From Paraphysomonas bandaiensis (taxonomy: Eukaryota; Protista; Chrysophyceae), in contig CBFFRP010000296.1 in assembly GCA_965644295.1 (NCBI GenBank), positions 186,001 to 250,000 of the forward strand: a stretch of DNA of 64,000 nucleotides, written 5' to 3'. Below the pieces are notes generated by a model. It saw only the letters and a program-made list of their open reading frames with translations, did no database searches and was not told where the DNA came from. Numbering within the stretch: the stretch's first letter is position 1; each line of letters begins with the position of its first letter. Both the position numbers and the translations under genes were made by a program. This document shows positions 2,302 to 63,507 of the stretch, in pieces.

Positions 2302-3021
2302 AGCAATGCTACTACGTGTGGTGTATTTTTTAGATGCGACATTAATACTACTCGCTTGAGACTGAGTAAGCGGGCTTTTATGATGATAAAATCTATAGTA
2401 ATAATGTGAAACGTATATTGACACATACATACATACACATCATACACATGCATGCGTTTGCTGCACATACACATGCATGCGTTTGCTGCAAATTAACGAC
2501 AAATCTTGAGCATATATAAATTTCACCTAAACTCATAGTTCATTACAGATTATAGTACCATCTACTAGTTCTCATTATTGCTAGCGCTTGTAACAGAAGA
2601 GCAATAACTGTACATACAATGAATAAACTGATTATTACCCAACAGCCCAATAGTACTCCAGCTCCGTACTCTACTACTCTAGTACCACTACTTATTACGT
2701 GATACTAGCCGGGGTCTCTGTAGCTGAAAGCCATTTCTGATACATTTCTCTTTTTACCACGACTGAGAGCATTGCGCAGTAAGTCGAGCTTATCCACTAC
2801 CTCACCTGCAACCTGCATGGTCTTCGTTTTCCATTTCGAACACGGTTTCATGCTGTAAATCAGCGCATAAATCAACGACGTACTCGGACTGAGCTTTCAC
2901 TGCGCATTCCAAATGCTTTACTCCACGTTTCCCTCCAATGTTAACAGGCCTAGTGCTTGCGTCATCGTCAATAACCTCGAGACACACAGCACAAATTAGT
3001 AATTGATGCACTTCCATCCAC
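2302..3021. repeat. ~700-bp dispersed repeat, copy 1 (copy 2 at 8468-9150, same orientation)
   Basis: Near-identical text from agcaatgctactacgtgtgg to gcacttccatccac at both sites, with scattered substitutions and a small indel. Confidence 0.9.
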
Positions 3022-3426
3022 ACTCTCCGCATTCCTACCGGTCATGGGAACCCACTTGTCATGCTCATTCTGTCGAGTAATTAAATTACCCTACAAAAAG
3101 CTTATTTTAGCTACATATTATATACATAATGAGGCATAAACCTTTACAATAGCTCTCCCGCATAGACAGCTAGTATTGAAGCTTGCTATACGAACCATGT
3201 ATCTGCATTCTTTATTTCTAGAGGAGCACATCACAAAGACTTCTGGGTCATATAAATCTTTCTCTTTCTTCCATACTTGTAAACGCCCTTCACATCGGTT
3301 GTAGTTTGGACAGGTTTCGTGTAGTTGCTGTACCATTTCACATTGTCGTCTCTTGAAAGGGCTGCGGTAGCTACTTGAACACGAAGATGACGACGACTGA
3401 GAGTCAGTCCTACTGTTTGAACTCAA
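2705..3426 (-). pseudogene. Degenerate Cys/His-rich zinc-finger-like ORF fragments
   Basis: CPNYNRC...VMCS...C, then SCLCGRAIVK-intron-GNLI...KW, then CAVCLEVI...KHLEC in another frame; frameshifted; the 3' part lies in the duplicated repeat. Confidence 0.4.
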
Positions 3427-4123
3427 AGTGTGGACAGTATCTGATGAAAATCTGACCTATGGTTTTTATTTCGTCAGCATTTTGCCTCGACATATATCGT
3501 AACTACCAAAAAAAAGTGATCAGGAGTATTTCGTATATAGGTCTCCTAGAACCTATATATTGTTTCCTAGAACTTAAAACTGATTATTTCCAATCGCTCC
3601 ATTTTTAAAGTTCATTGTGAAACTTTGTAAAATATTATCTGACACAGACCATTGAATGGTGTATCTGTAAGTAACTGAACTTAAAACTTACTCAATTAAT
3701 GAAAATTGTAATCAGCACCTCTTTAACTCACTAAAATTATATCGTCACAAATAAACAGACCACAATTCTAACTGAAAAATAAAATGTTAGATGAAGCATA
3801 AAATGTGAATATTACGTGAAAGAAAAGAATAAACAATAAAATTCAGTATTCTGTGGATATTATTTTAGCTGCTTTTTATTTGAGCATTCAGGTTAAATCA
3901 GCAAACGCACATTTATCACTATCCGAAGCGGGTTTTCTCTTCAATAAGAGACGATAACGTATCATTCATATAAGCATTATTTTCAATGCACAAATAGGTA
4001 CATATACATAGGTGTGAGGTACTATAGAAAGTATACTCTCGAAACTACACTCGGCGTAGCTGTCTATTGAAATATTCCCAGTAAAAGTGGTAACTAGTCA
4101 CACATGGCATCAAATATCGCGAG

Positions 4124-5381
4124 CTAAAATTCTCCTGCAGAGCAGTCGCTTCGCGATCCAATATAGCTGAAATAGGACGACTGTTGACTTGACTGCACAT
4201 CAGAACTCGGATTAACATGTAACTGTGACGTATCGGACATTGAGTCATTAGTGGACGAGTTCCGAAAAAAAGAAAAGTACGTAGCAATGGACAATGCAAC
4301 AGACAAGAAGTATGTTTTCCACTTGTTGAGCACATTAGGCGTAGCACTGTAGGCTAAGGCATCCAGGAACCCTTGCGTTCTAATGATGGTCGCGCCTATC
4401 AAAGAATATATCTTGTAGTTGGGCAGACCAACAGTCACTTCTGCAAGTCTGAACGCATAGATATCATTCGATGGCATAATGTAATACAGACATAGTGGTA
4501 TATAATAAGCACTCCTGGCATACAATATACTGTTGCACGGTTGAACTAAGTGGTATATCAAAGATTTAAAAAGGACTCATATACCTGTGGTACAACTGGA
4601 AGGCATAAACGATGACCAAAATAATTGGATACCATTTTATTCTATCAACCAATTTTATTATTCGATGTGCCTCGGTTGCGTTGCTTTTCTGTAACGCAAT
4701 ATAATTTATATACAAACTTGTATATATATGCAGTGAACTTGTACCTGCCATGATCGGACTCGACGAAGCACCGAGATATACGTGCACCCATTGAACGTAA
4801 TAGACAATAATAGTGGTACGTAGAACGTCACCATGACCCAGATAAAACCTAACTCATTTCTGTGTTCATTCGAAGTGTCGAACTTTATCCAACAAAATAT
4901 GTCGTCATCATTCTTACCAAAGCTGTTTGTTGTGGCCGGAAGCCAAACCATTAGCAATGGGCATCCAAACACAAAAACGTAGTGCCATCGATGCACCCGA
5001 ACAAAATATTCTTGCGTCAAAGAATTACGACTGAGAAATATCTTCCTCATGCACTCCGCTACTATGACAGTCGTGAAGGTGGACACCAGATTGAAGTATG
5101 TGGATATCGGCCCATAGAGCTTACAGGCGAAGTCATTCATATAACATATCTGTACAAATGTAGATATCGAGTATCCTGTTAGCACCAGTAATATCGTCAG
5201 AGAGGAGGGGTGTTACGTGTATCGCATGCTCACCATAAGAGCCGATAGCCAGCCACAGTGCGAATACTTGAGAGGGATTCCGTAACTCAGGAAACAATAT
5301 GTATGTGAGTAGAGTGAAGGTGTTCCCAATACAGGAAAACACTGTTGCGATAATGATACTAATGGGCACCTCCATCTTCAT
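4124..5381 (-). CDS. cAMP-receptor-like (CAR/GCR1/Git3-type) 7TM GPCR
   Basis: Four exons; seven hydrophobic segments; FCWI, FYVPL, YPII, QGFLDALAY motifs; Ser-rich C-tail. Confidence 0.8.
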
Positions 5382-5706
5382 GCATTTCTCTGAGGTCGAG
5401 AGACGCTGCTGGCTATTGTCAGATCCTGCCTCTTAGCTCCTGTACCTGTACACTGCATGCTGTACCTATATATAGTACTGTACATGCTGCACTGCTGAAT
5501 ATTAGATTATCTACTGTATATATTCCAATTTTTAGGATAAAACCCCCTATTTTATGGATAAGACATGGCAATATACTGTGCTGTTCCTACTGCTGGGTGC
5601 AGTTTGAATTGCACGCCATGAGCGACATGTAGCCTAATAGTTATATACTTGCCACCACATGAGCACATACAGTGGGCTTTCAATTACCTATTAAACCTGT
5701 AGTATA

Positions 5707-6155
5707 ATGTCGTCGAGTAGCAGTGGTAACGATGATCTAGAGGAGAATGAGTCCTCTAGAGTGCTGGGTATTGGGGCCGGAACATTCACAGTGGCCTTTA
5801 TGTTCTTCATAACTGTATTGGTGTGGATACTCACTGCACCTCAAGCAGGATTACTGAAGAACATGATGCGAATCACAACGATAGTCTTATTCCTCTCTGT
5901 GTTTGCGATATTGCTATTTGCGGATCGCGACAGTCAATACAAAAACCAAGAGGAAGAAGTCAAGGTAGTGACCAGAATATTTCTCATTACTTTACTAATT
6001 CACGAGTTCGAATACAGGACTACGATGATAGTTTAGGTCCGCGAATTGCGATTTCGGTGTTGATGATATTCAGTACTCTCCTGTCTGGAATGATGGTGTT
6101 TTTCAATCACTGGACAATCCCGTTCAATGTACGTTCACTTCAATGTAAATTGTGA
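5707..6155 (+). CDS. TMEM218: TMEM218-like ciliary transition-zone membrane protein
   Basis: VLGIGAGTF start of TM1, three TMs, EEVK-intron-DYDD linker, and H before a C-terminal P, matching TMEM218 as recalled. A further intron could move the stop to 6234. Confidence 0.7.
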
Positions 6156-6769
6156 TGCTACTCATTAATTCGTTTCACTATGGTCCTAGGCATCAAGTCA
6201 AGATCTTGACAACTCTGCTTTATGGCAAGAATAGTTAGTGCAGAATGTGTGCAGTTATTGCAGTTCCTGGCCTTATATATATAGATTTGATGTACGTTGC
6301 CAGTTTTTGTCTCAGAGTATTTGTATCTATAGTAGCTGGAAAAACTTACAATTAAGTATGTCAAGTGTTTTTGTTATATTTGAAACTATATATTTTGGTG
6401 AGCTAGGGGCCTCGGAAAGAGGTTTACCGTGTCTAGTTTCGGTTGGCGACCTCGGTTGGAAACAAGCTACGCGTAACATTTTATATATTTTTAATATTAA
6501 TCAGCATTGTCCTGTAATCATTAATATTGACGTTGTGCGTGCTATGTATGCTTAATGAGAGCATTGTTCACTGAATATTATGTCGGGTAGCTACTTGAGA
6601 CTAACAAAATCCAAATATTACAACTTCAGCAGAAGTATTTTAGAGTTCGATAAGTACAGTAGTATTTTATATACTAAGGACGAAGGTGCAGTTGTTTTAC
6701 AGTTGAACCATTGAATTACGATTCAGTATAACTCTACAATCAGACACGGCAACAGAATATCACAGTGCT

Positions 6770-11663: not shown

Positions 11664-11893
11664 GAAATGATGCAGCAGCACCCATAATAGATCAGGAGCT
11701 TCAAAATTCCCCTACCTCAGAGTTCTTATAAGTACAATGGGCACCTTCCTCACAGCCAACACAACGAAGCGAGTGATAACTTCATCAATAAAAAGCAACA
11801 ACAACAAAATTCGTAACGTTTTACTTCAACAGTACAATTTACGGATAGGAAACCGTTACCGTAGCCCGTTCATATATCACACATTGTATATAT

Positions 11894-12132
11894 GTGTATG
11901 TATGTATGTATGTATGTATGTATGTATGTATGTATGTATGTATGTATGTATGTATGTATGTATGTATGTATGTATGTATGTATGTATGTATGTATGTATG
12001 TATGTATGTATGTATGTATGTATGTATGTATGTATGTATGTATGTATGTATGTATGTATGTATGTATGTATGTATGTATGTATGTATGTATGTATGTATG
12101 TATGTATGTATGTATGTATGTATGTATGTATG

Positions 12133-12166
<34 letters not shown>

Positions 12167-12840
12167 TGTATGTATGTATGTATGTATGTATGTATGTATG
12201 TATGTATGTATGTATGTATGTATGTATGTATGTATGTATGTATGTATGTATGTATGTATGTATGTATGTATGTATGTATGTATGTATGTATGTATGTATG
12301 TATGTATGTATGTATGTATGTATGTATGTATGTATGTATGTATGTATGTATGTATGTATGTATGTATGTATGTATGTATGTATGTATGTATGTATGTATG
12401 TATGTATGTATGTATGTATGTATGTATGTATGTATGTATGTATGTATGTATGTATGTATGTATGTATGTATGTATGTATGTATGTATGTATGTATGTATG
12501 TATGTATGTATGTATGTATGTATGTATGTATGTATGTATGTATGTATGTATGTATGTATGTATGTATGTATGTATGTATGTATGTATGTATGTATGTATG
12601 TATGTATGTATGTATGTATGTATGTATGTATGTATGTATGTATGTATGTATGTATGTATGTATGTATGTATGTATGTATGTATGTATGTATGTATGTATG
12701 TATGTATGTATGTGTGTATGTATGTATGTATGTATGTATGTATGTATGTATGTATGTATGTATGTATGTATGTATGTATGTATGTATGTATGTATGTATG
12801 TATGTATGTATGTATGTATGTATGTATGTATGTATGTATG
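11894..12840. repeat. (TATG)n microsatellite, ~950 bp
   Basis: Almost perfect tetranucleotide array with two single-base interruptions. Confidence 0.99.
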
Positions 12841-12987
12841 AGATGTATGATTATCTTTAACTGTCGTTGACTGGGTTACTGGGGATGATCATACGAAAGT
12901 AATCGTTGAATAGTGTCTTGGAAGACACTTCTTGGAGTGCTAATGTGATGTAGTTCTAGTATTAAATATATATAACAGTATATACAC

Positions 12988-14321
12988 ATGAGTATGATCA
13001 GCAGTGACTCCTCATGTGAGAGTATTGAGCTCAGGGATGCTGTTGTTGTCTCATCTAACATAAGCAGTGGAGCTTATAGAAGAAAAGTCGCACCTGACTG
13101 TGATGAGATCGATATGAAGAAACAGGTGGCTCAAGTGTCATACAGTGCTGTGAGGGCCCCTACTGATGATGTTGTTGGTAATGGCGGCTATAACAATAGT
13201 CGCGATGTTGGTTGTGTTGGAATTAAGTGGAGAGTACGCATAGTGAGAGTGTATGATTCTGAAGAAGAATGGAAAGGTGTTGTAGAAATATATTTTCATT
13301 GGAAAAAAGATGCCTCGAAATCGTCGAGCATGAAAGCGTTTCATGATCCTGGTCGTTCAAATCATCGCCGCAGGTCGTCTATTTCTGTATCACATATGGA
13401 TACAATGGCAACAATTGAGGAGCCTGACGTACATCCCATATTTCTTATTCTGAATGACGAGAACTCACATTCTACTGAAGAAATATATTATACCTGCAAA
13501 GACTGCCCGTCTTTGTTGTTCGGGTATATGGAGTATACTGTCAACGTGCATGAGCGTTTGGAGTTGCAGGTTTGTGACATTGTATGTTGTTTTTACCGCT
13601 GTTAATGTGTGTAATACAGAGATATCCATTTGATAGACAATTTTTCAAGCTTGAAATTGAGTGCAATAATGGTATCATCGTCCCTTGGAGCTGTCGAACC
13701 TTATCCCCTCTTGTGCTTTCTCGGCTTGAGGAAGGTGCCGTGAACAATAATTTCTTTGGTACATGTGACACGCCATCGTGGAAACTTGATATCATGGAGG
13801 TGTCACAGAATGGACGCCCAGCATCCGCTACAATGAAACTCGGACTCTCACGGCTGAGTGGGTTTTATGTGTCGAATGTGGCTTTGCCGTATTTTTTGAT
13901 TGGGACAGCAGCTGTACTTACGACTGGGATAGAATCCGAAAATTATGCTGATAGGTTTTCATGTATGATAACATTATTCCTCACGATAGTGGCCATCAAG
14001 TTTGTGGCCAATTTTGTCCCAGTCATTAGCTATTCCACATTGCTAGATTACTATACCCTCACAGCTTATATATTTTTATCATGCTGGATGATAGAGAATT
14101 ACGTCGTGTCTCCTTTTGTTCTAGGTGCTGGTAAAGAAGAGGTAGCCCGGCAAATAGATATATGGGGTGGAATTATATACGTAGGTTTGTGGTCAATGCT
14201 CCATGTGTTTATTATGGTGGCAACTAAGTATGACCTCTTCCGCAAGAAGTGGGAAGATGTCGTATTGGATGACAACAAAGCAGATCCCGATACACACAGA
14301 GAGGCCGTAAAGTTTGACTAA
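12988..14321 (+). CDS. Pentameric ligand-gated ion channel-like (Pro-loop, Cys-less) subunit
   Basis: Intron 13570-13618 joins LELQ to RYPFDRQF (Pro-loop); R..GFY pre-M1; M2 ADRFSCMITLFLTIVA; M2-M3 loop PVISYSTLLD; four TMs. Confidence 0.8.
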
Positions 14322-28976: not shown

Positions 28977-31900
28977 CTACTTAGAATTCTGTTCAGCAAG
29001 CATGTCCTGAAATCCTTCAAACAATACACCCACGGGAATCGAAAAGAGTGCGACCCCGATGAGCGCCATAATAGTACAAACGATCGACCCCAGAGGAGTA
29101 AAGTCGACCACTGCCCATTCTCCAGCTAAAAATATAGCACAGTAATAGAGCGCATCCACAATGGACACAAAGACTGCCGCATCTTCTCCCCCCCTAGCAG
29201 CCGCTTCAACATCTTCATCGTCACTATGTGGCTCAAGATAATAAAATAGGGTAGCTCCTCCGACCCAGACAATCAATGCCACGACACCAGTAGCTTTAAG
29301 AACTGGAGCCGCTTTCACAAAAACGTCGTCCAACAAAGAAAACGCTTTGAAAAATTTCTCCAGCTCCAGTATACGCGCCAATCGGAATATTCGGAACACT
29401 GTGGCATCAAATACGAGGGTCGGAAAGAATATAGGAATTACAATGACCTGGATGTAGTAGGGTGCAATGGCCAGTAGATCTGCCAGACCGATAAAAGAGG
29501 TCATGAACTTCGATCGCTGAAAGTTCCATTTGGGATCATACACAGCCGTGAAACAGTTTGTCAAATACTCAACAGTAAAAAATATTACGGAAAACGTTTC
29601 AAATGCTTGCCATACAGCATGAGGAACCGTCTCTTCAATTGACGGAACACTCTCCAGAATAACCGCAAGGATATTTAAGGCGATCAGAGCTCCCACGAAC
29701 GTGTGGTAAGCTGTCGAGGAGGGAGATTTACGATTCTTCCATATACATATACGAGCACATATAGGGGGGTTGGAAGAGTCCAAGCCACGGAGAACAGCAC
29801 TGTGAGTGATAGCATCTTGTACAACCATCTGAAAGGCTCGTGCAGAGGCACCTGCAAAAGTCCAGAAAATATCAGATGAAATTATAATAGCTGTACAAAA
29901 ATCACTTGGTAAATATAGGCGATCGCATATTGTAGTCCCAAAAAATAATAATAGCACGTAATATCGAAAAAGATTCATACCTGGCATGGCCCCACTTCTT
30001 GCTTTCCTTGCCAGAAACATTCGTTGACATTTGACCGCTGCATCATATCTTGTTTGTCGTCTCTTCTCGGCCTGAGCTTGCAGGATTTCCACAAAAGCCC
30101 CAGCTAGAATAGAGGCCGGCACAGCAACAATTCCTACAGCAACAACCACTGCAACAACGCAGCACAACTTGCCCCACAAAGAAAAGTCAACAATAGGATA
30201 GTCCCCAGTGAGAAGGACCGCGCTATACTGCAGAGAGGACAGTGCGGAGCGAAATCTTTTGTCTTCACTGTGTTCAGCATCATTCCGTTCGGCGAAGTAC
30301 AAACACTCGTTAAATAGGAACCATAGGACAACACCTACAAACAAAAATGTAAGCCTGAAAAACACAACCCTATCGAGCCATATAAACTGCACTGTATGAA
30401 CGTACGCTAATGACTTACCAGCGTAACATGACACGGAGAGACCATCCCAGCAGTCGCGGAACGCATCATCAACAAGAGATATGCTGATGACAACGTAAGA
30501 ATATATTTTACAGCTAAAACTGACAATCTAACGTAGTGTATATAGAGCACGTTTCTAATTTAAGTACCAATATAACTACTAGTAGACAGTGTAAATAGCG
30601 CACGCATGCTTGTGCGTGACGAGACGCTGTATAGTATACCTGGGAGCATACGTATCCAGGCGAACCAATCGCAATAGTCTAATTGCCCTCAGTGGACCAT
30701 CGTATACATCCATCAGACGCGCTAAATGTGGTCCAAACAACCCTCGTGCAAGGTACCAAGGAAATGTTGACACGAAATCAACAAATCCAAGCCAGGAGAA
30801 TATGTAAGTAAACCCATGGGCTGAAGTGCGCAGAATGTACTCCAGAGTGAACCACACGACAACAATCATTTCCAACACACTCACAATGTGCAAGGCTCTA
30901 CCAGTGTTAGTTGCGAACTCACACGTGCTGATTACTTCCAACGTCACAGCGAATAATGTTGCACACACAGATATGGTTTGGAACATTTTCCCTCGGGTGC
31001 CACGACCTTCAACCAATCTTTGAGACCAGTTTAACTCCTCAGAAGAATGACTGGAGCGGTCCTGACTACTCGGGTTCGGCAATTGCTCAGTTTGATCAGG
31101 CTGCTTCATCTCCACCTCTCCACCTATTGACCCATATCCTGACGGCTTATTTAACCGGTTCTTTCCACTTGGACTCTTCTCTTCCCTGCCGTCCTGGATT
31201 TCATTGGCATCCTCCTTGTCACCAGAAGCAATTTCACTTATCACACCCTCAAATCCAGCACCAAGCGCACCTACAGCAATCTACATTAATAAAACAGGTC
31301 TTCTTGTGTTTAACTAATAATATTGCACATGTGCTCGATATCAGTGAGAAACTCACCAACTGGTACAGCGAAAACTGCCACTGCCACAATTGACAGAAAT
31401 CCCACAATGATTCTACCGACTAAAGTATAATCACACAATGGTGCTTCCCCAGAGAGATTTAAGAGAGTCATCCACATCGCAGTGGGCACAGAGCTGTAAT
31501 ACGATCTCATCTTGGGATCCGGGTTATTTCGTTCGGCAAAGTACATCAGTGCTGAGCAGAACACAAGACAACATGAGGCAGCCATTCCACCAATGGCGAG
31601 AATGCCGTGAGATTTCGAAACGACACGTGAGAGTATCTGAAACCCCATAGAGTACCTCTCGTACTTCATCATTCGAAAGAGAGATATAGTGAGAAAAATA
31701 TACGCAGGACACCCCACTACACCGCCCAGTACATAGAGTACAGTGGGTAACCAGGACATTAAGTCAGCCAATGGCAGCAGACTACACCACATTGCCTTAT
31801 ACGTAGCCTCTGGGCCGGCATACAATATACGCAACACATGATCTACAAAAAAGAACACCGCGCACACAATATCCGCCAAATAAAAAATAAATATCCCTAA

Positions 31901-33102
31901 TGCAGGCATTGACTTCATGGTACTGAGTACAGATGCAAAGGCAGAGACACAAATGAATGACCCAGTCAGTGCTTTGTACGCCTTTTTCGTAGTTAACGGC
32001 GGCGGGGCCATTATTACGGACGCTACGGGGGAAGAAGTAGAAGAAGGCGCTCTGTGTAGTAGAGCCTGCGCCTCAGCAGCAATCTCTGCAGCGTCATCAT
32101 CATCTACGTCGTAGTCTTCTTCTTTGCCTGCAATAAAGCCTTGTCACAACATGGAACAGGGTCAAAGCAAAGTGTACATACCAGTATTAAGTGCGCTAAC
32201 AGCACCCTCCAAGGCTGCGCCTATTAACCCCGTGGGGATAGCAAATATACCGACAGATATTACAGCAGTTGCCACTGCAACAAACCTACCCAAAGTTGAG
32301 TGATTCTCAGCAAGTGGATATTCCCCTGACAGATTAAGAAGCACAAAGAACATGGCTGATGGTATTGAATTAAATCGATTTTGACATATACATGACGAGC
32401 CCTCACAACCATCATCGTCACACGTGCAGTGCTTCGACGGTACCCCGTCGGGTGGGTAGCACCACTCCATGTCCTCGTTACCCCTCTCCGCGAAGTATTG
32501 CAGTGAAGCAGTTACAAGCCATACAGCTCCCCCAGCAAAACTAGCTGCGTAAATTAAGGATTTATTCTCATTCCAACTTGATAGAAACGCGGTACTTGCA
32601 GCTGACCCGCGCTCTGATGCTGTAAGGAATTTCAAAAGTCGAAGCATACGTAGAAACTGAAGTGCCGGAAAAGCATCACCAGGAATAATTAAATCAAGCC
32701 ATGACGGCAAAATAGAGAACAAGTCAACAATGGCAATCGGCTGAAACATCCATGATAGGACACTATCCGCGACCCACAATCGCATTACATACTCTGCAAA
32801 AAGTGAAGGTGATAATAGAAGCGCTTGATTTCATAGTAACTCACCTATAGTGAACACTATCACACAGAAGCACTCAATTCCAGAGAACAGAGGGTCATAT
32901 GTCGGGGTGAGAGAATCAACAGTGCTCACAGCGAATGACAGGGTCGATATGAGTACTAAAAACACCAAAATTTGAACTAGAAATGGACCCCTTCATGAGA
33001 CACATGAGACATCACACGACATGGAGATACGCGGCATTACCACTCGCCCTTCCCGTCTAGAGTCTTCGCTATGTCAGACTTCTGCATAGTAGATGGTATC
33101 AT
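28977..33102 (-). CDS. Four-repeat (4x6TM) voltage-gated-like cation channel built from Kv-type domains
   Basis: Canonical GT-AG splices join four Ion_trans repeats in frame; S4-like LRMLRLLK, LFRMMKYER, LRAIRLLRLVR, FRIFRLAR; pore loops LNLSGEYP, LNLSGEAP, LLTGDYP, FLAGEWA; S6 FAIP/FAVP/VAVP/FSIP. Confidence 0.8.
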
Positions 33103-33664: not shown

Positions 33665-35734
33665 ATGGTGTTTCCGTCTGGCGGTAGCGCTGGTCTCATT
33701 GTCCTCATATGCATGCTTGTGGTTCTTCTATCTGGTCATGCAAGAGCCGGAGAGTGTGTATGCTCAGATATGTCCAGTCAGCGCCGTGCACTGGGTTCTC
33801 GTCGGAGTATCAAGTTCTCTGATGCAGTGGTGAGAGGCGTTGACTATAAGAGACTGGCCACTAAGCGGCACAGGAGACATATCGCAAAATCTGAAACTGA
33901 AAATAATAATTGTGAGGCGGAACAGGTTCATATTTCTCCGGGAAATAGCATCGACTCGATGTTCGTCTCTTATACGAGTAATTCTTTCAAGTCAGAGGTT
34001 TATTATTCACACCGGGAAGCCGACGTGTTAAATGATGCCCACTCGCAATTAACTGCAACGGGAACGCATCGAGCTTATGCGGAGCAGTACTACATAATCG
34101 GCAATCTAGTAGACCCCGGTATGGGCGAGCCAATTCAGACTAGCGAGTATATTAGGGAACTTGAAGACACAACCGCTTGGGCGTATGACAAGGACACTGG
34201 GGAACGTTGGGCAAATTGGTATGCCTACTATTTACTATTTTGTCTTCTAACCTGTTATAGGTACAATGTAACTGAAATGTTCTATAAATTCGGCCAGTAT
34301 AACAACCCTTATATGGTATATCAGTCTCCCTTGGTGCATGCCGTTGAACTAACTGGATTATCTTCTGGAGTTACCTATTACTACAGGGTGGCAGATTCAT
34401 GCACTGTTTTTCAGTTCACCATGCCGCGGTTTACCTTATCCGACACCTCAAAGTCTCAGGAATCTCTTTTTCCATTTTCATTTGGTATGATTGGAGATAT
34501 AGGGCTCACTAACGTTAGTATGATGACTTTCTCTGCTTTGGAGGCGCTAGAGAGCGATGCGGTATTGATTGTCGGAGATCTCTCGTACTCGGATGGTTGG
34601 ATGAATACTTGGGACAGCTTTGGACGGGCCATTCAGTCGTTAGGATCTCAGACACCTTTAATGACAACAGGTGGAAACCATGGTAAGTTTATAGTTAAAT
34701 GTTCTATGTAGGATTGACAGTACAATATAATATAGAACTGCAGTCAGGAGAAAACTGGGTCTCCTATCAGCTACGATATTTGACCCCGTATAGCGGTAGT
34801 GGATCACCAGATCCCGTTTACTGGGGTCGAGAAATGGGGCCTGTTCATGTGATTGCCCTTAACTCCTACGCTGCCTACTCGAATACTAGTATTCAATACA
34901 GGTGGTTAGAAAACTACCTCTCGACTCATGTGAACCGCGACCGCACGCCATGGGTTGTTGTGATGATGCACACACCCCTTTATCACTCAAATACTGTACA
35001 CTGGAAGGAAGGGGAACTCATGCGTCTTGCGATGGAACCCCTGTTATACGCTTATGGAGTGGACGTGGTTTTGTCTGGGCACTTGCATGCATATGAACGC
35101 ACAGAACCGGTATATGATAACTCACTAGATCCTTGCGGCATGACTCACCTTATTCTTGGAGACGGAGGAAATTATGAAGGTGATGGAGGGCCAAATGCTT
35201 TCCTCGCATTGATTGTCAATAATTTTGTATTGTGTAGGGGAGGCCACCCCTTGGAGGATAGAAAACACTTCTACAGGGGCTCCCGTCTGGAGCAGTTTTC
35301 GAGAGTCTTCTTTTGGTGTTGGCTCAATTGTTATTGTAAATTCTACTCACGCTCAGTTTTCTTGGCATCGGCATGCCTGTGGGTCCTCCTCCTCGGATGC
35401 ATACTACATGAATTTCAGTGACTCCTGTTTCAGTCCAGAGGATAATAGTGAGCATGCAATGGAGACCAGTGATTCTACGTGGATAGTGCGACCCGACTCG
35501 ATAACATGTCCTAACCGCCATACAACTACTGGCTACACTCCTACATCCTCTACATCTTCCGGCAACGACGACGACAGCGATGGATTATCATCCACAGCAG
35601 TTGCTCTTATTGCCGTATGCTGTATTCTGGGCATTTTGTGTCTAACTCTCGCCGGAGTGATTGTGTACTTGTATAAGAAAATACGAGTAAAAGGAAGTAG
35701 CGATGGAACAGATTTGCTCCAGGTTAAGTCGTGA
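33665..35734 (+). CDS. Purple acid phosphatase, type I membrane form
   Basis: Signal peptide; FN3-like EQVHIS...YYYRV; metal motifs GDIG, GDLSY, GNHE (split by an intron), VMMH, GHLH; C-terminal TM. Confidence 0.9.
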
Positions 35735-36357: not shown

Positions 36358-37909
36358 CAGGGATAGGGAACAATATATTGCAATACTATTGTTAGGTAGC
36401 GTTCCATCAATAGTATTGATGGATTTTTTAAACCGGCCCTACAATACTATTGCAATATATTGCAATATATTGTACAATATATTGCAATATATTAGTATGA
36501 CTAATCAGTAAGTAAACACATCCGTAGTTTTCATTTTTAGTACTTGCCATATTTTATAAGGTCTAAGGTCACTTGATAATCAAACCCACTACTCTTAACT
36601 AATTAAAAGTTTCCTCATACTCATCCTCTGAGCCATCATCGGTGACATCATCATCACCATATTCATTCAATATTGATTGAAATATGCTTGCATCCGGCCA
36701 CAACTGTCGGTTAGCTTTCAGAAACAACAGCATATTAAGTGTAGTAGGATGCATACGTTTGCGCAACACTGATATAATCAGTTTTGCTGCGCTGAACAGG
36801 CGTTCACACGTATTGGAAGTACATACTACATGACTCGTGCACCTGTACTTAGATATTTCAACTTTTCGCTTCTTAAGTTTTTGAGCTGATTGAAGTATCA
36901 AACCAATCCGCAGCAGTGAATCCGTAGAATTTCTCTTCATCAGGTAGATCTTCATCGAAAACAGTGTTGTCATCAATATCCTCTTGCACATTACAAGACA
37001 ACAATAACAAATTCGGAGTATTGGTTCGGTCGCAAAAGGTTGCAAATATTGCACTGTAGTGGTGGGAGTCCGACGTCCAACCGTCCATGACTAGACCAAA
37101 TGTTGGTGGTAATATATCTTTAATCATATCACGTAGCTTCAGTTCCAACAGTCTCATATATTTTTTCAGTGTTTTTGTAGTTATCTTACCCAAAGAAGTC
37201 TTATTTCTAGTTAATTTCTTCTCACAGAAATTTAATGGAAGATTTTCCTCGACAATCCACTCCACCCACTCATAAATTGTTTTCGCCTTGTCTGAAGGCT
37301 GCAGAACAAAAGCATCCATGGGACCATTGGTGCAGACAGCCCGTAAATACCTCTTCAATGTCTCCTCCCACACATCATGAGAGAAAGTGTGATCCTTTAG
37401 ATTGTTGTATCCATTCCGAATATTCTGTTGTCGTTTACGTCCGCAGATTTTACACTCGTGTTTGTTCGGGACACCTTCGACCGGACTCCAAAAACAGCGG
37501 TAAATGTCCCTACTCTTGTATGCACTCATCATTCAGTTGTCTCTTCTTGTCACTATAGGATATATATACTATATTAAGAGAAGTACTGTACATACATGTG
37601 GAGAGGTGTAGAGTGCTGTTTGAGCTGGCGATACATAAAAAATAGAAAATAACATCAAAAATAGGCTTTTTTTCTTATTTTCCGGATATTTGTATACAGA
37701 GGCGTATATTTTGCACCATACAGTTGATGATCTTCTCTTATATGACTATCATAATATTGATTGCAATATATTGCAATAGTATTGTGAGCTCTATTAACAG
37801 AAACACTATTGATGGAATATTTGACCAGTCCACCAATCAATATATTTTACAATATATTGCAATATATTGTACAATATATTGCAATACAATATATTGTTCC
37901 CTATCCCTG
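36358..37909 (-). mobile_element. Internally deleted hAT DNA transposon (Ds-like, 1552 bp)
   Basis: Perfect 23-bp TIRs cagggatagggaacaatatattg; perfect 8-bp TSD GTACATAG (36350-36357, 37910-37917). Confidence 0.93.
36599..37532 (-). pseudogene. Truncated hAT transposase
   Basis: BED finger CKIC...H...H and first catalytic D (LVMDGWT), fused out of frame to the C-terminal dimerisation domain (TSNTCERLFS...LLFLKAN...W); central core missing. Confidence 0.88.
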
Positions 37910-55516: not shown

Positions 55517-58500
55517 TTAGTGCGATACCATAGTGTGCACATGCTGATAGTGCAGCTTCTCGGACAAGGCTTTAGTCATCACGTCTGCTGTCATCTCTGC
55601 CGTTGGCACATGATTCAGCCTGACGATACAGCCTCCCACTTGCTCTCGAATCCAATGATACTTGATCCGAATATGCTTGGAACGTTTATGATTTACCGGG
55701 TTCTGAGCTAGATCAATCGCACTCTTGCTGTCCATATTCAAGATTGTTGGAGACGCATTCTTACTGAGCTCAAATCCACGAATTCCGAGCTCTGTCATCA
55801 CCCCTCGTATCCATACAATCTCCTGAATTGCAGCATATGCAGCCATATATTCAGCTTCCATAGTCGACGTAGCCACTGTTGGCTGCAGTCTGGACTGCCA
55901 TGCAATTGGAGCACCCCACAGATATACGATATACCCTGTAGTGGATCTGCATGTATCCAGATCTCCGGCCCAATCTGCATCAGAGTACACACATAGAGGG
56001 TCTTCATCTGTGAAATTAGGAAATATGATACCTTGATCAACTGTATTTTCTAAATACAATAAAGTATGCAGAGCAGCTTGACATGCAGCGTACGTGGGTC
56101 TTGTGGTGAACCGGGAGAGAAGATTTACTGTATATGCCATGTCTGGTCTAGTATGCACTGCCAAATACATTAAGGCACCAATAACAGATTGATAGGGAAA
56201 TGCATCAACGTATTCTCTCTGTTTTCGAGTTTCTTCCTCTTTTGCATCCTTGGACAACTTTAGGCCAGGTGGTAGAGGTGTGGTTGCCTTGCACCGTCTC
56301 TTCTTTTCTGACAACAAGTGATTGAATCTGGCCACAACATCTTTAGCATATGCAGACTGATGTAACTTAATCTGGCCATTATGACGCTCAATGGTAAGAC
56401 CTAAATAATGCTTAAGGTCCCCCATATCTTGCATGGCATATTGAGTCTTAAAGGCGCTGATGACTTCTTCAATATGACGGCTGTCAGAGCTGAGCACAAT
56501 GATATCATCTACATACACAAGTATCATATGTAGGTTATCATCAGTACCCTTGAGTACAAATAAACATGGGTCAAGAACACATTGTTTATACCCCATCGCC
56601 TTTATACTGTCCTTCAGCATTGAATGCCAATTTCGAGGCGCTTGTTTTAGGCCATACAAACTCTTCAGAATCTTCAAACAACAGCCTTGTGGAATATCTA
56701 TTCCTGCAGGTGGAGACATAAACACGTCTTCGTCCAGATCTGCATACGGAAATGCCGTTTCTACATCGAGTTGACGGAGTTGCAGATTGTATCGCAGAGC
56801 CAGTGCTAGTGCTAGCCTAAATGATACACCTTTAGCTACTGGGGAGAATGTCTCATTATAGTCGACTCCTTGTTCTTGAGTAAACCCTTTCGCCACAAGT
56901 CGAACTTTGAACTTCTTAATTTTTCCAAGATGGTCGCGCTTTACTTTAAAGACCAATTTAGATTTTATGATTTTTCGGTGTTTCGGCCTTCGGACAATCT
57001 TCCAGCATGTCCTTCGTTCAAGCTTGTGCACCTCCTTCCTGGTAGCTTCAATCCAGTATGTTCTCTGTGGAGTCTTCTTTGCTTCTGCCAGCGTCTGTGG
57101 CTCTTTAATTGTGCTGTTGGAGGAATCAAGAAACAATGAGACATCGCCGAGGACACCAACGTTAACAATGTGCCGTTTTTTTCGAGGTCGTTTTTCAGTT
57201 CTGGGATTTCGATCTGCCCCACCTGTTGAAGATGCGCCCCGATTTGAGCGGTCAGGAGTCCTCTGTTCATTGTCACTGTCATTACAAGTCTGATCCAACT
57301 CATTTCGCAAACTATTAAACTTGTCGGTCTGACACTTTGTAGAGTGAGTCATCTTTACTACATCTTTGATATGAATTGGAGTTTGCTCCTCGGTAGTATT
57401 TCCTTTCATATCTAATCTCCTATATGCAACAATGACTCCTCTTCTCTCTATCACTCTGGTGGTAACATAACACAGGTGTCCATCAAGATGTCTGAGGCCC
57501 ACCAGGTACTGATAGTCATTTACACTCTCTGCTGTTTCTGAGGTGTCGATTTGTAGATTATCTATTTCGTCGAAATACTCCTGTGAACGCTCTGGAATTG
57601 ACTCATCAAACTGTGCATTGACTGCAACAATAATAGCATTCAGGTCTGGAATATATATTTGGTGTCCAACAGGTTGTTGACATTGTCCCATATAGTATCC
57701 AGGTTTTCCCTTTTCTTTCCACTCTTTGCGGCGCTGCTCCTTCGGCACAATAGCCCATGCCTTGCAGCCCCAGATCTTCAAGTCACTCACATCTGGTGCG
57801 GTTCCAGTAATATACTCAAAAGGTGAGATGTATCCTTTCGTTGTCTTCGTAGGTAACCTGTTGATCAGATATACAGCATGCAAGACTGCTTTGAACCAAA
57901 ATACTGATGGCATGCCACTATCGAGCAATATAGCAAGGGCCATCTCCTTCACTGTACGATTAGTGCGTTCCGATAGCGAATTCATTTCGGGTGTGTCACG
58001 TGGAGTCCAAGTAACCTGTACAGTCCTTGTGCTGGTGGTTTCACGTAAGTACTGCCTGACATGTTGCCCTACTAGTTCTCCTGCGCCATCTGCATGATAT
58101 CGTCGTAGTTGCAATCCTTCTTTGACAAGTTGGGTCTCTACCATGTCCTTCATACACTTTAACACTTCACTCCCAGTCTTGTTTTTCAACCCATAAGCCC
58201 ATACATGTTTTGCATCACTGTGCTTGAATAGTAACACATGTTTGTAGCCTTCCATCGATGGCGTGTTTAGGACTTCCATCGTATCTGCACTGAGCACCCC
58301 TCTCTCCTTTGGGTTGTTGTCTAAGTTCATCAACTGGCGTGGAGTCCTGAAGTTCTTTCTCGTGAGTTTCGATCGCATGCAGGTATTACATTTGCATATC
58401 GTTTTTTTGTGTTTTTTTCTGAAATATTTCTTGTCCAGATTTATTCCATCAACTAGGCCTCGGCGGTCGGACTCAGTCAGTTTATCATAGTTGACATGGC

Positions 58501-60034
58501 CAAGTCTTTTGTGCCATAGAATTCGCTGGTCATCAAACCCCTGCTCCTCAAGTGCTGCTGAGGATTCTTCTCCAAGCTGAAGTAAGTCTTCGAGTCGAAC
58601 TGGATATAATCCATTAACACTTCTCTGTCTAGTGAGTGTCTTGTTCGTAGTCTTATTTCGAATGACGACTTCATCATTATCGAACGTCACAACACAACCC
58701 CTATCTGTGATGCTCTTCATATCTACGAGGTTCTTACTTGCTTCAGGTGCGTAGTACACCTTTTTAAAGCTTCCTACATCGCCAACACTGTGTATTGACA
58801 GTTTACCTTTGTTCGCTGTGGACATCTGCCTATCAGCGCGCTGAAGGTTGGTCATGTGGTTTTTGGAGGTAAGGATCATCTTGTTGCACCCGCTGTCTAA
58901 ATAAATAACATCTGACATGCTCTGTGCTAGATTCACCTCTTCTTCCACACATATCATCGATTCGTATCCCGCTTCATCTTCTGAATCATGTACAGACACT
59001 CGCGGTTTCTTCTTGTTCTTGTAGGGTGCCGTTTCCCTTCTAGAGTCTCGCCCCCGTTTAGAACTGACCACTGCAGCTTTAGCAGTCTTCAAGTGGAAGC
59101 AGTCTTTAGTCTGATGGCCTGGGATGTCACATATCTCACACACAGGTAGCTTTGTTTTGTTATCACCCCTGTTTCTGTGATCTCTATCTTTTCTCTGTGA
59201 TCTTGTCCCCTTCATCCTCTTTATGACATGCTCTGGAGTCTTGCACTCCCTAGCAAAGTGGCCAAGTTTCTTGCACTTATTGCATCTGCCCTTTCTCTTG
59301 TGCTCTTTCCATTTACTGTCATCCACTGCTTGATTGACACTGTCTTCCCCTGAATTTTGCAACGCATGCTTGCCGAATGATGTGTTTTCATACCCTTTGA
59401 TTAGGCTGCTTGCTCTTGCGTATGTCACATCGTTTGCTGTATACAGGCTGTGTGCTAGTTGGGAATATCTCTTGTCTGTGAGACCTTCCTTTAGTCGAGT
59501 GAGCTTGTCGTCTTCCGTGACTTCACGACCTAGATTCTCGAGAATCTTGGCCTGGGCTTCAACGCTGTCGACGAACTCTGCTCCTGACTGACTTGAGGTA
59601 ATCTTCATTGAATTGAACTTTGTGACCTCTGCCTGTACTGTATTCTTTTCAACGTTGAGAAATCTCTCTTCCAGTGCCTGTAGTAACCCTTTTGCTGTAC
59701 TTCCTTCGTAGAGAGCCGCTGTTGTGCCTGCTTTTGGGTGAGCATTGCACACTTCCATCAGGAAGGAGTACGCGGTCTCGTTCCGGGTGTTCCAGAGTTT
59801 CTTCGCTTTGCGTAGTCGCTTCTTCTGTGCATCAGTCATATGAGCTCCCGCTGGGACTGTAGAGTCTAGATCATGAATGTGCCTTGGTTTATCCTTTGAG
59901 AGGACAAGATGAGCTCGATTGTGTCTCATGAGGAATGAGGTGAAGAGCTTCTTGAATTTCTTGAAGTTCAGTTCCTCGAAGGGAGGTACCTTTGAGCCTG
60001 AGGCGACATTCGTGAAATTTCCATCCGCTGCCAT
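55517..60034 (-). CDS. Copia gag-pol polyprotein (1505 aa)
   Basis: Two CCHC knuckles, protease LDSG, integrase WHKRLGH..CNTC and DDE, RT LYGLKQAPRNW/YVDD, RNase H DADWAGD/EAEY/KHI; PR-IN-RT-RH order. Confidence 0.97.
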   Translation of the reverse strand: MAADGNFTNVASGSKVPPFEELNFKKFKKLFTSFLMRHNRAHLVLSKDKPRHIHDLDSTVPAGAHMTDAQKKRLRKAKKLWNTRNETAYSFLMEVCNAHPKAGTTAALYEGSTAKGLLQALEERFLNVEKNTVQAEVTKFNSMKITSSQSGAEFVDSVEAQAKILENLGREVTEDDKLTRLKEGLTDKRYSQLAHSLYTANDVTYARASSLIKGYENTSFGKHALQNSGEDSVNQAVDDSKWKEHKRKGRCNKCKKLGHFARECKTPEHVIKRMKGTRSQRKDRDHRNRGDNKTKLPVCEICDIPGHQTKDCFHLKTAKAAVVSSKRGRDSRRETAPYKNKKKPRVSVHDSEDEAGYESMICVEEEVNLAQSMSDVIYLDSGCNKMILTSKNHMTNLQRADRQMSTANKGKLSIHSVGDVGSFKKVYYAPEASKNLVDMKSITDRGCVVTFDNDEVVIRNKTTNKTLTRQRSVNGLYPVRLEDLLQLGEESSAALEEQGFDDQRILWHKRLGHVNYDKLTESDRRGLVDGINLDKKYFRKKHKKTICKCNTCMRSKLTRKNFRTPRQLMNLDNNPKERGVLSADTMEVLNTPSMEGYKHVLLFKHSDAKHVWAYGLKNKTGSEVLKCMKDMVETQLVKEGLQLRRYHADGAGELVGQHVRQYLRETTSTRTVQVTWTPRDTPEMNSLSERTNRTVKEMALAILLDSGMPSVFWFKAVLHAVYLINRLPTKTTKGYISPFEYITGTAPDVSDLKIWGCKAWAIVPKEQRRKEWKEKGKPGYYMGQCQQPVGHQIYIPDLNAIIVAVNAQFDESIPERSQEYFDEIDNLQIDTSETAESVNDYQYLVGLRHLDGHLCYVTTRVIERRGVIVAYRRLDMKGNTTEEQTPIHIKDVVKMTHSTKCQTDKFNSLRNELDQTCNDSDNEQRTPDRSNRGASSTGGADRNPRTEKRPRKKRHIVNVGVLGDVSLFLDSSNSTIKEPQTLAEAKKTPQRTYWIEATRKEVHKLERRTCWKIVRRPKHRKIIKSKLVFKVKRDHLGKIKKFKVRLVAKGFTQEQGVDYNETFSPVAKGVSFRLALALALRYNLQLRQLDVETAFPYADLDEDVFMSPPAGIDIPQGCCLKILKSLYGLKQAPRNWHSMLKDSIKAMGYKQCVLDPCLFVLKGTDDNLHMILVYVDDIIVLSSDSRHIEEVISAFKTQYAMQDMGDLKHYLGLTIERHNGQIKLHQSAYAKDVVARFNHLLSEKKRRCKATTPLPPGLKLSKDAKEEETRKQREYVDAFPYQSVIGALMYLAVHTRPDMAYTVNLLSRFTTRPTYAACQAALHTLLYLENTVDQGIIFPNFTDEDPLCVYSDADWAGDLDTCRSTTGYIVYLWGAPIAWQSRLQPTVATSTMEAEYMAAYAAIQEIVWIRGVMTELGIRGFELSKNASPTILNMDSKSAIDLAQNPVNHKRSKHIRIKYHWIREQVGGCIVRLNHVPTAEMTADVMTKALSEKLHYQHVHTMVSH

Positions 60035-62688: not shown

Positions 62689-62988
62689 GATGTTGAGGTG
62701 ACTTGATGAAAATGAATTCAGCTATTCAACTAATGGACTGTACGTGAGCTTGTCTCCTCTGGTGTGTAGCTCAGGGCGGAGTGGGAAGAAAGATGCATGT
62801 ATAACTAAGAAACGAAACATAATAAAAAGAAAATGAATGGCAGAGGGGCAGTCTGCTGCTCGTGACTTCGAAGTATGAGTGGTATGTGGAGTGTATATAT
62901 AATATATACGATCCAACCACGAGTGTGCCGTATGAATGGAAATGGTACGCCGCAGAGGGTACTCCAGTACTGCTGCAAGGTATATCGG

Positions 62989-63280
62989 TACATACATACA
63001 TACATACATACATACATACATACATACATACATACATACATACATACATACATACATACATACATACATACATACATACATACATACATACATACATACA
63101 TACATACATACATACATACATACATGCATACATACATACATACATACATACATACATACATACATACATACATACATACATACATACATACATACATACA
63201 TACATGCATACATACATACATACATACATACATACATACATACATACATACATACATACATACATACATACATACATACA

Positions 63281-63312
<32 letters not shown>

Positions 63313-63322
63313 CATACATATA
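62989..63322. repeat. (CATA)n microsatellite, ~330 bp
   Basis: Same unit as 11894-12840 in the opposite orientation. Confidence 0.99.
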
Positions 63323-63507
63323 CAGGTGTATCATATGATATGGCTTGGTTTCGATCCCAGAAGTAAACTAAGAGCGCATCTCATACTTTAAATCGCCGTA
63401 TTTTAGTCGGGTTATTTTTCCGTTCGAAGCGAACGAGTTCTCTGTGTTGCTGCTCCTCTGTCTTCCTACTGGTCTCTGTATGAATATCTTCATACTTTAA
63501 CAGTATT

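Follow-up and report, generated by a model that had tools for sequence, protein, structure and literature searches.

The gene and its product

The window analysed here is a stretch of 64,000 nucleotides from Paraphysomonas bandaiensis (assembly GCA_965644295.1, contig CBFFRP010000296.1, positions 186,001 to 250,000), and the element under study is a gene on its minus strand, from 33102 to 28977, that encodes a channel with four six-transmembrane (6TM) repeats. The gene comprises eight exons separated by seven introns of 50-156 nucleotides, all bounded by GT-AG, and the reading frame is open as far as the stop codon at 28977. An earlier note, made from the sequence alone, had proposed that open reading frames (ORFs) looking like separate K+ channel genes are spliced into a single chain of about 1,200 amino acids (aa) with four 6TM repeats. 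This is borne out by P0165, a complete MMETSP transcript product (MMETSP1103) from Paraphysomonas, a chrysophyte, which was recovered by a homology search started from a natural relative. All eight exon translations are 100% identical to P0165, in order and gap-free, and therefore the gene is expressed as a single four-repeat protein. The length is corrected to 1171 aa: counted from the second ATG (33087) the product has 1166 aa, and the N-terminus of P0165 is five residues longer, which fits the ATG at 33102. The two splice junctions that had been named (32182/32127 and 31357/31270, GT-AG) are right. Our searches were started from exons taken singly, from alignments of exon references or from proteins of the database, the joined exon model being used for the frame check only. 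The gene is laid out as follows.

28977-33102, minus strand: gene, 1171-aa four-repeat (4 x 6TM) channel, eight exons (frame check, P0165 match)
33041-33102, minus strand: exon 1, short N-terminus, without T1 or other N-terminal domain
32845-32990, minus strand: exon 2, repeat I, S1-S2
32182-32793, minus strand: exon 3, repeat I from S2 to S6, including an extracellular turret with six cysteines (includes a Pfam Ion_trans match)
31357-32127, minus strand: exon 4, I-II linker and repeat II (includes a Pfam Ion_trans match)
30640-31270, minus strand: exon 5, II-III linker (disordered) and voltage sensor of repeat III (includes a Pfam Ion_trans match)
30419-30483, minus strand: exon 6, repeat III, S4-S5 linker
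29981-30334, minus strand: exon 7, repeat III pore and beginning of the III-IV linker
28977-29851, minus strand: exon 8, remaining III-IV linker, repeat IV and stop codon (includes a Pfam Ion_trans match)

There are thus four Ion_trans matches in total, in exons 3, 4, 5 and 8. Separate genes for the repeats are ruled out by P0165, a single complete transcript product, by the long open frames of a paralogue in the same genome (see below) and by the relative P0008, an intronless gene of 1153 aa.

Filter, voltage sensors and predicted structure

The four pore motifs are those that the earlier note had read, LSGEYP, LSGEAP, LTGDYP and LAGEWA, standing in place of TVGYGD. The Kv-style framing described there for S5 (YFAE) and S6 (F-x-I/V-P) is found in general, with two departures: S5 of repeat IV ends in YYLE, and S6 of repeat III has VAVP. 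The conservation of the four acids was obtained from an alignment of 124 sequences, 97 of which cover all four ring positions.

32321-32323, minus strand: E227, ring residue of repeat I (sequence; E in 94% of aligned relatives)
31445-31447, minus strand: E501, ring residue of repeat II (sequence; E in 98%)
30201-30203, minus strand: D807, ring residue of repeat III (sequence; D in 99%)
29118-29120, minus strand: E1125, ring residue of repeat IV (sequence; E in 92%)
30003-30041, minus strand: III-IV linker, degenerate IQ-like motif as a candidate site for calmodulin (pattern counts; PF00612 in relatives)

The E/E/D/E ring is present in 85 of the 97 sequences covering all four positions and is preceded by GG GG in 65, while TVGYG is missing from all four repeats in essentially all family members. 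In the family alignment, the position after the ring acid is an aromatic or small residue, not an acid. The offset of the acid from the start of the pore helix is that of the ring Glu of Cav-like domains from the same genome and of the Val of TTVGYG; the acid stands directly after the pore helix, in the high-field register of Cav/Nav. Between the acid and S6, the loop has two residues fewer than that of Kv and shows no sequence of a Cav-type P2 helix, and in the HMMER alignment to KCNQ1 the two-residue gap falls before the filter Gly. The likeness to the filter of CNG channels suggested by the earlier note is not upheld, since CNG channels retain T(V/I)G and differ in what comes after it (PMC3082925), whereas here two residues are lost before the Gly and the acid occupies the Cav/Nav position; a CNG-like filter is ruled out by this register. 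The alignments, together with the structural model, show a predicted filter in which an acid ring in Cav register is set on a Kv-type loop. Within the family, a subgroup including dinoflagellate members carries Lys or Arg in repeat I, at the ring position or immediately ahead of it, as well as a Trp that follows the acid of repeat II, and the ring of P0014 is largely neutralised; these are possible selectivity variants.

The voltage sensors had been described as asymmetric, and for this protein the description stands: S4 has four Arg in repeat III, three basic residues in repeats I and IV, and two on the charged face in repeat II. Across the family it does not. The mean number of Arg plus Lys per S4 window is 3.8, 4.3, 4.1 and 3.0 for repeats I to IV, the two core Arg of every S4 show a conservation of 75-98%, and repeat II is no weaker than the others, which rules out a family-wide asymmetry. 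The counter-charges in S2 and S3 (Glu, Asp) and the Phe in S2 are highly conserved in several repeats. The linkers span 40-75 aa; of 115 III-IV linkers, 36 contain the IQ-like pattern, compared with 0-2 occurrences in the other linkers, and Pfam IQ (PF00612) is called in some relatives. In 50 sequences the turret of repeat I contains six Cys, and in 33 it contains none.

The AlphaFold2 model of P0165, obtained with a 99-sequence alignment, is a confident 4 x 6TM structure (predicted local distance difference test, pLDDT, 87; predicted template modelling score, pTM, 0.86) with 24 membrane helices and one pore helix per repeat. In this model the cysteine turret of repeat I is rich in beta structure, the II-III linker is disordered, and the III-IV linker is long and helical. 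There is no P2 helix; in repeat I the filter is followed only by a helical turn of three residues. Superposed as a whole, the chain matches Nav1.7, NALCN and Cav (Z 18-23, root-mean-square deviation, rmsd, 5.7-7.1 A, 12-14% identity). Single repeats superpose best on Kv4.2, Kv4.3 and Kv2.1 over both sensor and pore (Z about 15, rmsd 3.5-4.1 A, 16-19% identity), and non-swapped channels align by the sensor alone or with high rmsd. The model points to a domain-swapped pseudo-tetramer, although known four-domain structures may have influenced the prediction.

Family and origin

In the first search, a profile built from the exon-derived repeats matched numerous proteins of 1100-1900 aa, each in four stretches. 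At least 143 complete proteins with repeats I-II-III-IV were found in the databases (at least 114 distinct at 90% identity and at least 64 at 50%), with a median length of 1253 aa. They are distributed among Stramenopiles, Alveolata (dinoflagellates) and Rhizaria (a foraminifer cluster), together the SAR group, as well as the streptophyte alga Mesostigma and the apusomonad Thecamonas. Other named sources are Aplanochytrium, chrysophytes, Seminavis, Nitzschia, Pseudo-nitzschia (two entries), Attheya, Symbiodinium, Biecheleria, Nemacystus, Bolivina and Polykrikos; the Atlas also contains diatom- and haptophyte-rich clusters that bear generic names only, the haptophyte ones being look-alikes. As had been predicted for automated annotation, relatives are labelled as potassium channels ('gated channel subfamily KQT member 1', 'Shal') or as 'ion transporter'. 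The family searches retrieved no complete one- or two-repeat relative with an acidic filter; the shorter matches cover adjoining portions of the I-IV series and have the appearance of fragments. The presence of the family in an apusomonad, SAR and a streptophyte suggests a great age, with transfer as an alternative.

At the sequence level, KCNQ2/4/1, Kv2.1 and Kv4 are the best PDB matches of the repeat profile, which aligns with them along its full length at about 110-125 bits. For Cav, the highest score is 91.5 bits, a sum over four stretches, the best of which ends before the filter. The closest single-domain proteins in the databases are channels of 240-450 aa with TTVGYGD, probably mostly prokaryotic. 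The per-repeat trees included Kv-like, CNBD-type and Cav/EukCat-like rows, with Cav domain numbers assigned from motif and order; the long-branched Biecheleria and Polykrikos were excluded from the final trees, and the label 'Foram' of P0008 is unconfirmed. All family repeats form one clade (100/100) nested among Kv-like rows (99/94, 96/82, 98/91), while the Cav/Nav-like rows are separated at 100/100, and the four repeats are closer to one another than to any Cav domain. None of the repeats branched inside the clades of the Cav domains represented (domain I was absent). Moreover, approximately unbiased (AU) tests rejected the grouping of repeat III with Cav III and of repeat IV with Cav IV (p-AU about 0.0004 each), ruling out orthology with these two domains. 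The origin independent of the Cav domains that the earlier note had proposed is supported by this rejection and by the fully supported clade.

Each repeat forms its own clade across species, except for the Thecamonas repeats, whose placement is unstable. In the trees, repeat I pairs with repeat II (support 96, or 98/90 when the Thecamonas repeats are included), unlike the I+III and II+IV pairs of Cav/Nav and CNGK. Nevertheless, this duplication order must be interpreted cautiously, as neither I+III (p=0.09) nor II+IV (p=0.07) was rejected by AU tests.

The paralogue lies on G000:C275, at about 2750-6545, and has only about two introns and intact open frames, with the counterparts of exons 3-5 in one frame of 735 codons and those of exons 6-8 in another of 404 codons. 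Its closest database relatives are P0050 and P0137, one of which has a GYGD-like stretch in repeat III. Other four-repeat Kv proteins were also encountered. P0065 (L044:160-4641) is an intronless ORF of 1493 aa on a metagenome contig, with four very similar Kv repeats and TVGYG-type filters, and P0047 (1748 aa) likewise keeps TVGYG-type filters. Both fall outside the E/E/D/E family, and therefore four-fold concatenation of Kv repeats occurred more than once. The genome itself contains 144 Ion_trans matches and at least five Cav-like four-domain genes, one of which (L023) has Lys at a ring position.

Our reading of the window revealed no evident link between the neighbouring genes and the channel. 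The divergent neighbour (33665-35734, plus strand) resembles, by eye, a membrane-anchored purple acid phosphatase, and ORFs at 12988-14321 (plus strand) resemble a pentameric ligand-gated ion channel without Cys loop. Also by eye, two overlapping ORFs at 36599-37532 (minus strand) resemble a broken hAT-type transposase, and an uninterrupted ORF of 1505 aa at 55517-60034 (minus strand) a Ty1/copia retrotransposon polyprotein. Long arrays of four-base microsatellites (TATG/CATA) are located at 11850-12860 and 62700-63350 of the window and, directly upstream of the paralogue, at L009:1-2700.

Possible function and relation to known systems

The transcript, the family and the predicted fold show that a single chain of four Kv/KCNQ-type repeats builds the whole channel. 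In the scenario that we favour, which the trees support, a Kv-like subunit would have given rise to the four-repeat chain through duplications of its own, independently of Cav/Nav/NALCN and CNGK. Before or during concatenation, two residues would have been lost from the inner end of the filter and an acid placed right after the pore helix; the sequence register and the model show the resulting E/E/D/E ring at the depth of the Cav/Nav high-field site, followed by a short Kv-type loop without P2. K+ selectivity requires four contiguous carbonyl sites (PMC3082925); the shortened filter cannot form them, and cations would therefore most likely pass without K+ preference. Ca2+ would most likely be carried or bound as well. 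The channel would probably be opened by voltage, sensed by S4 segments that have 2-4 basic residues and are coupled in a domain-swapped way, and would probably be tuned by calmodulin at the III-IV linker. We consider it probable that the protein is such a voltage-opened, calmodulin-tuned cation channel that lacks K+ preference and passes or binds Ca2+, its likely role being depolarisation and Ca2+ entry in protists and algae.

Several observations weigh against this proposal. In a few relatives, Lys or Arg stands in repeat I either at the ring position or ahead of it, and the ring of the paralogue, in the same genome, consists of Thr, a deletion, Ser and Asp, most acids being lost. Orthologues of the paralogue elsewhere have similar ring changes, and the alignments show that the putative ring can be remodelled within one branch. 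In mimics of CNG built on NaK the filter acid acts indirectly (PMC3082925), so that an acidic ring alone does not fix selectivity. Regarding the origin, the trees were built without rows for animal Kv/KCNQ, CNG, CNGK, TRP and Cav domain I, and the AU test did not reject the family as sister to the whole Cav/Nav-like group (p=0.16). The exact attachment point is therefore unsure, with the four-fold duplication independent either way.

Permeation is where the nearest competitor departs: with the same architecture and origin, the channel could prefer monovalent cations (Na+ or Na+/K+) and be chiefly blocked by Ca2+, in the manner of bacterial Nav or NaK-type channels. Four-acid rings do occur in Na+-selective prokaryotic channels, bacterial Nav having four Glu and yet preferring Na+ (PMC6259924), and an acid at the position after the ring residue, missing here, is linked to Ca2+ selectivity in a review (PMC10120453). 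However, the strict maintenance of the asymmetric E/E/D/E ring across very distant lineages and the IQ-like motif fit Ca2+ handling, and we regard this alternative as unlikely. Less likely still is that the channel is not gated by voltage but is a leak, pH-, lipid- or ligand-gated channel, possibly of an inner membrane, with S4 charges of structural value. The modest number of basic residues (2-4 per S4 here, mainly two Arg per S4 in the family) and the cysteine-rich turret of repeat I, suggestive of an outer binding site, would agree with it, in contrast to the conserved S2/S3 counter-charges and S2 Phe; this alternative concerns gating and overlaps on permeation with the Ca2+-handling channel that we favour.

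An atypical K+ channel, retaining K+ preference through an unusual filter, would account for the Kv/KCNQ-like scaffold, outer loop and S6, but is very improbable given a filter that is two residues shorter and has TVGYG in no repeat of essentially any member. Least credible is a very diverged branch of Cav/Nav/NALCN that is Kv-like in looks only. The register of the ring, the whole-chain fold matches to Nav, Cav and NALCN (including those by Foldseek) and the unrejected sisterhood speak for it. It is nevertheless largely refuted by the rejection of domain orthology, the greater proximity of the four repeats to each other than to any Cav domain, the lack of a P2 helix, and an identity of 12-14% to Cav/Nav versus 16-21% to Kv.

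We found no earlier description of the family, nor any already characterised family with this architecture, in the open-access literature (subscription journals lay outside the search). In a broad survey, Kv-like channels are reported in one- and two-repeat forms only, with TVG[YF]G conserved outside CNG (PMC7576140), and the available parts of four-domain channel surveys name only relatives of Cav/Nav/NALCN and CNGK (PMC5824947, PMC6259924, PMC10120453, PMC12412391). The accession of the Thecamonas member is absent from the supplements of PMC7576140 and PMC5824947, and was not found in those of PMC12412391, as far as these were available; its S4 segments differ from those of the seven Thecamonas channels given in the literature examined. 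A survey of diatom Ca2+ channels, which does not mention the family, reports that Cav is absent from pennate diatoms except Seminavis (PMC11085791), while the family is present in Nitzschia and in the two Pseudo-nitzschia entries. It seems to us an even question whether all of the following holds: that this is an undescribed and very old eukaryotic family, with which the 4 x 6TM chain arose independently for a third time; that in it a Kv scaffold converged on a Cav-type ring, a natural K+-to-Ca2+ filter conversion; and that it lets Ca2+ enter under voltage control in many algae and protists, among them pennate diatoms for which no Cav has been reported. If Ca2+ does pass, inventories of algal Ca2+ channels miss a class. 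These proteins would also offer a compact natural test case (about 1150 aa, with no obvious need for large domains) for the way in which the filter chemistry of a Kv scaffold shifts away from K+ towards Ca2+/Na+, and for the reasons why rings become asymmetric once repeats are concatenated.

With KCNQ (Kv7), Kv2/Kv4 and short single-domain Kv channels, the family shares the S1-S6 scaffold, the start of the pore helix, the short outer loop, the P-x-G motif in S6 and an IQ-like helix after an S6. In contrast to their single repeat per chain with TVG[YF]G, it has four repeats and a Gly-acid filter two residues shorter, without T1 domain or long C-terminal tail. With Cav/Nav/NALCN it shares the 4 x 6TM chain, the predicted arrangement and one acid per repeat directly after P1. 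Those channels have a P2 helix and T-x-E-x-W, whereas the family lacks P2 and the Trp two residues after the acid, its chain is short (see the median above), and its repeats are not orthologous to Cav III/IV. A comparable Gly-acid pair is seen in certain TRP channels where the pore helix ends. No TRP chain was present among the best 60 PDB sequence matches or the best 50 structure matches, and the tree had no TRP rows.

CNGK channels of animals and choanoflagellates also join four K+-channel-type repeats in a single chain (PMC7576140). Their repeats are of the 6TM-CNBD type with a K+ filter, whereas the family has Kv-like repeats without GYG and matches only PF00520 and, in some cases, PF00612, with no CNBD family among the Pfam matches of the exons or relatives. 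CNG and NaK illustrate how a K+-channel scaffold loses its selectivity when the filter is shortened and contains an acid (PMC3082925); CNG, unlike the family, keeps T(V/I)G, has the acid two positions further out and assembles as a tetramer of separate chains with CNBD. Protist channels with two fused Kv-like repeats in one chain, described in PMC7576140, keep TVG[YF]G, whereas the family has four repeats and a fixed acidic ring. Judged by these sequence features, the family belongs to the voltage-gated pore-loop superfamily and stands apart from Kv, Cav/Nav/NALCN, CNG and CNGK.

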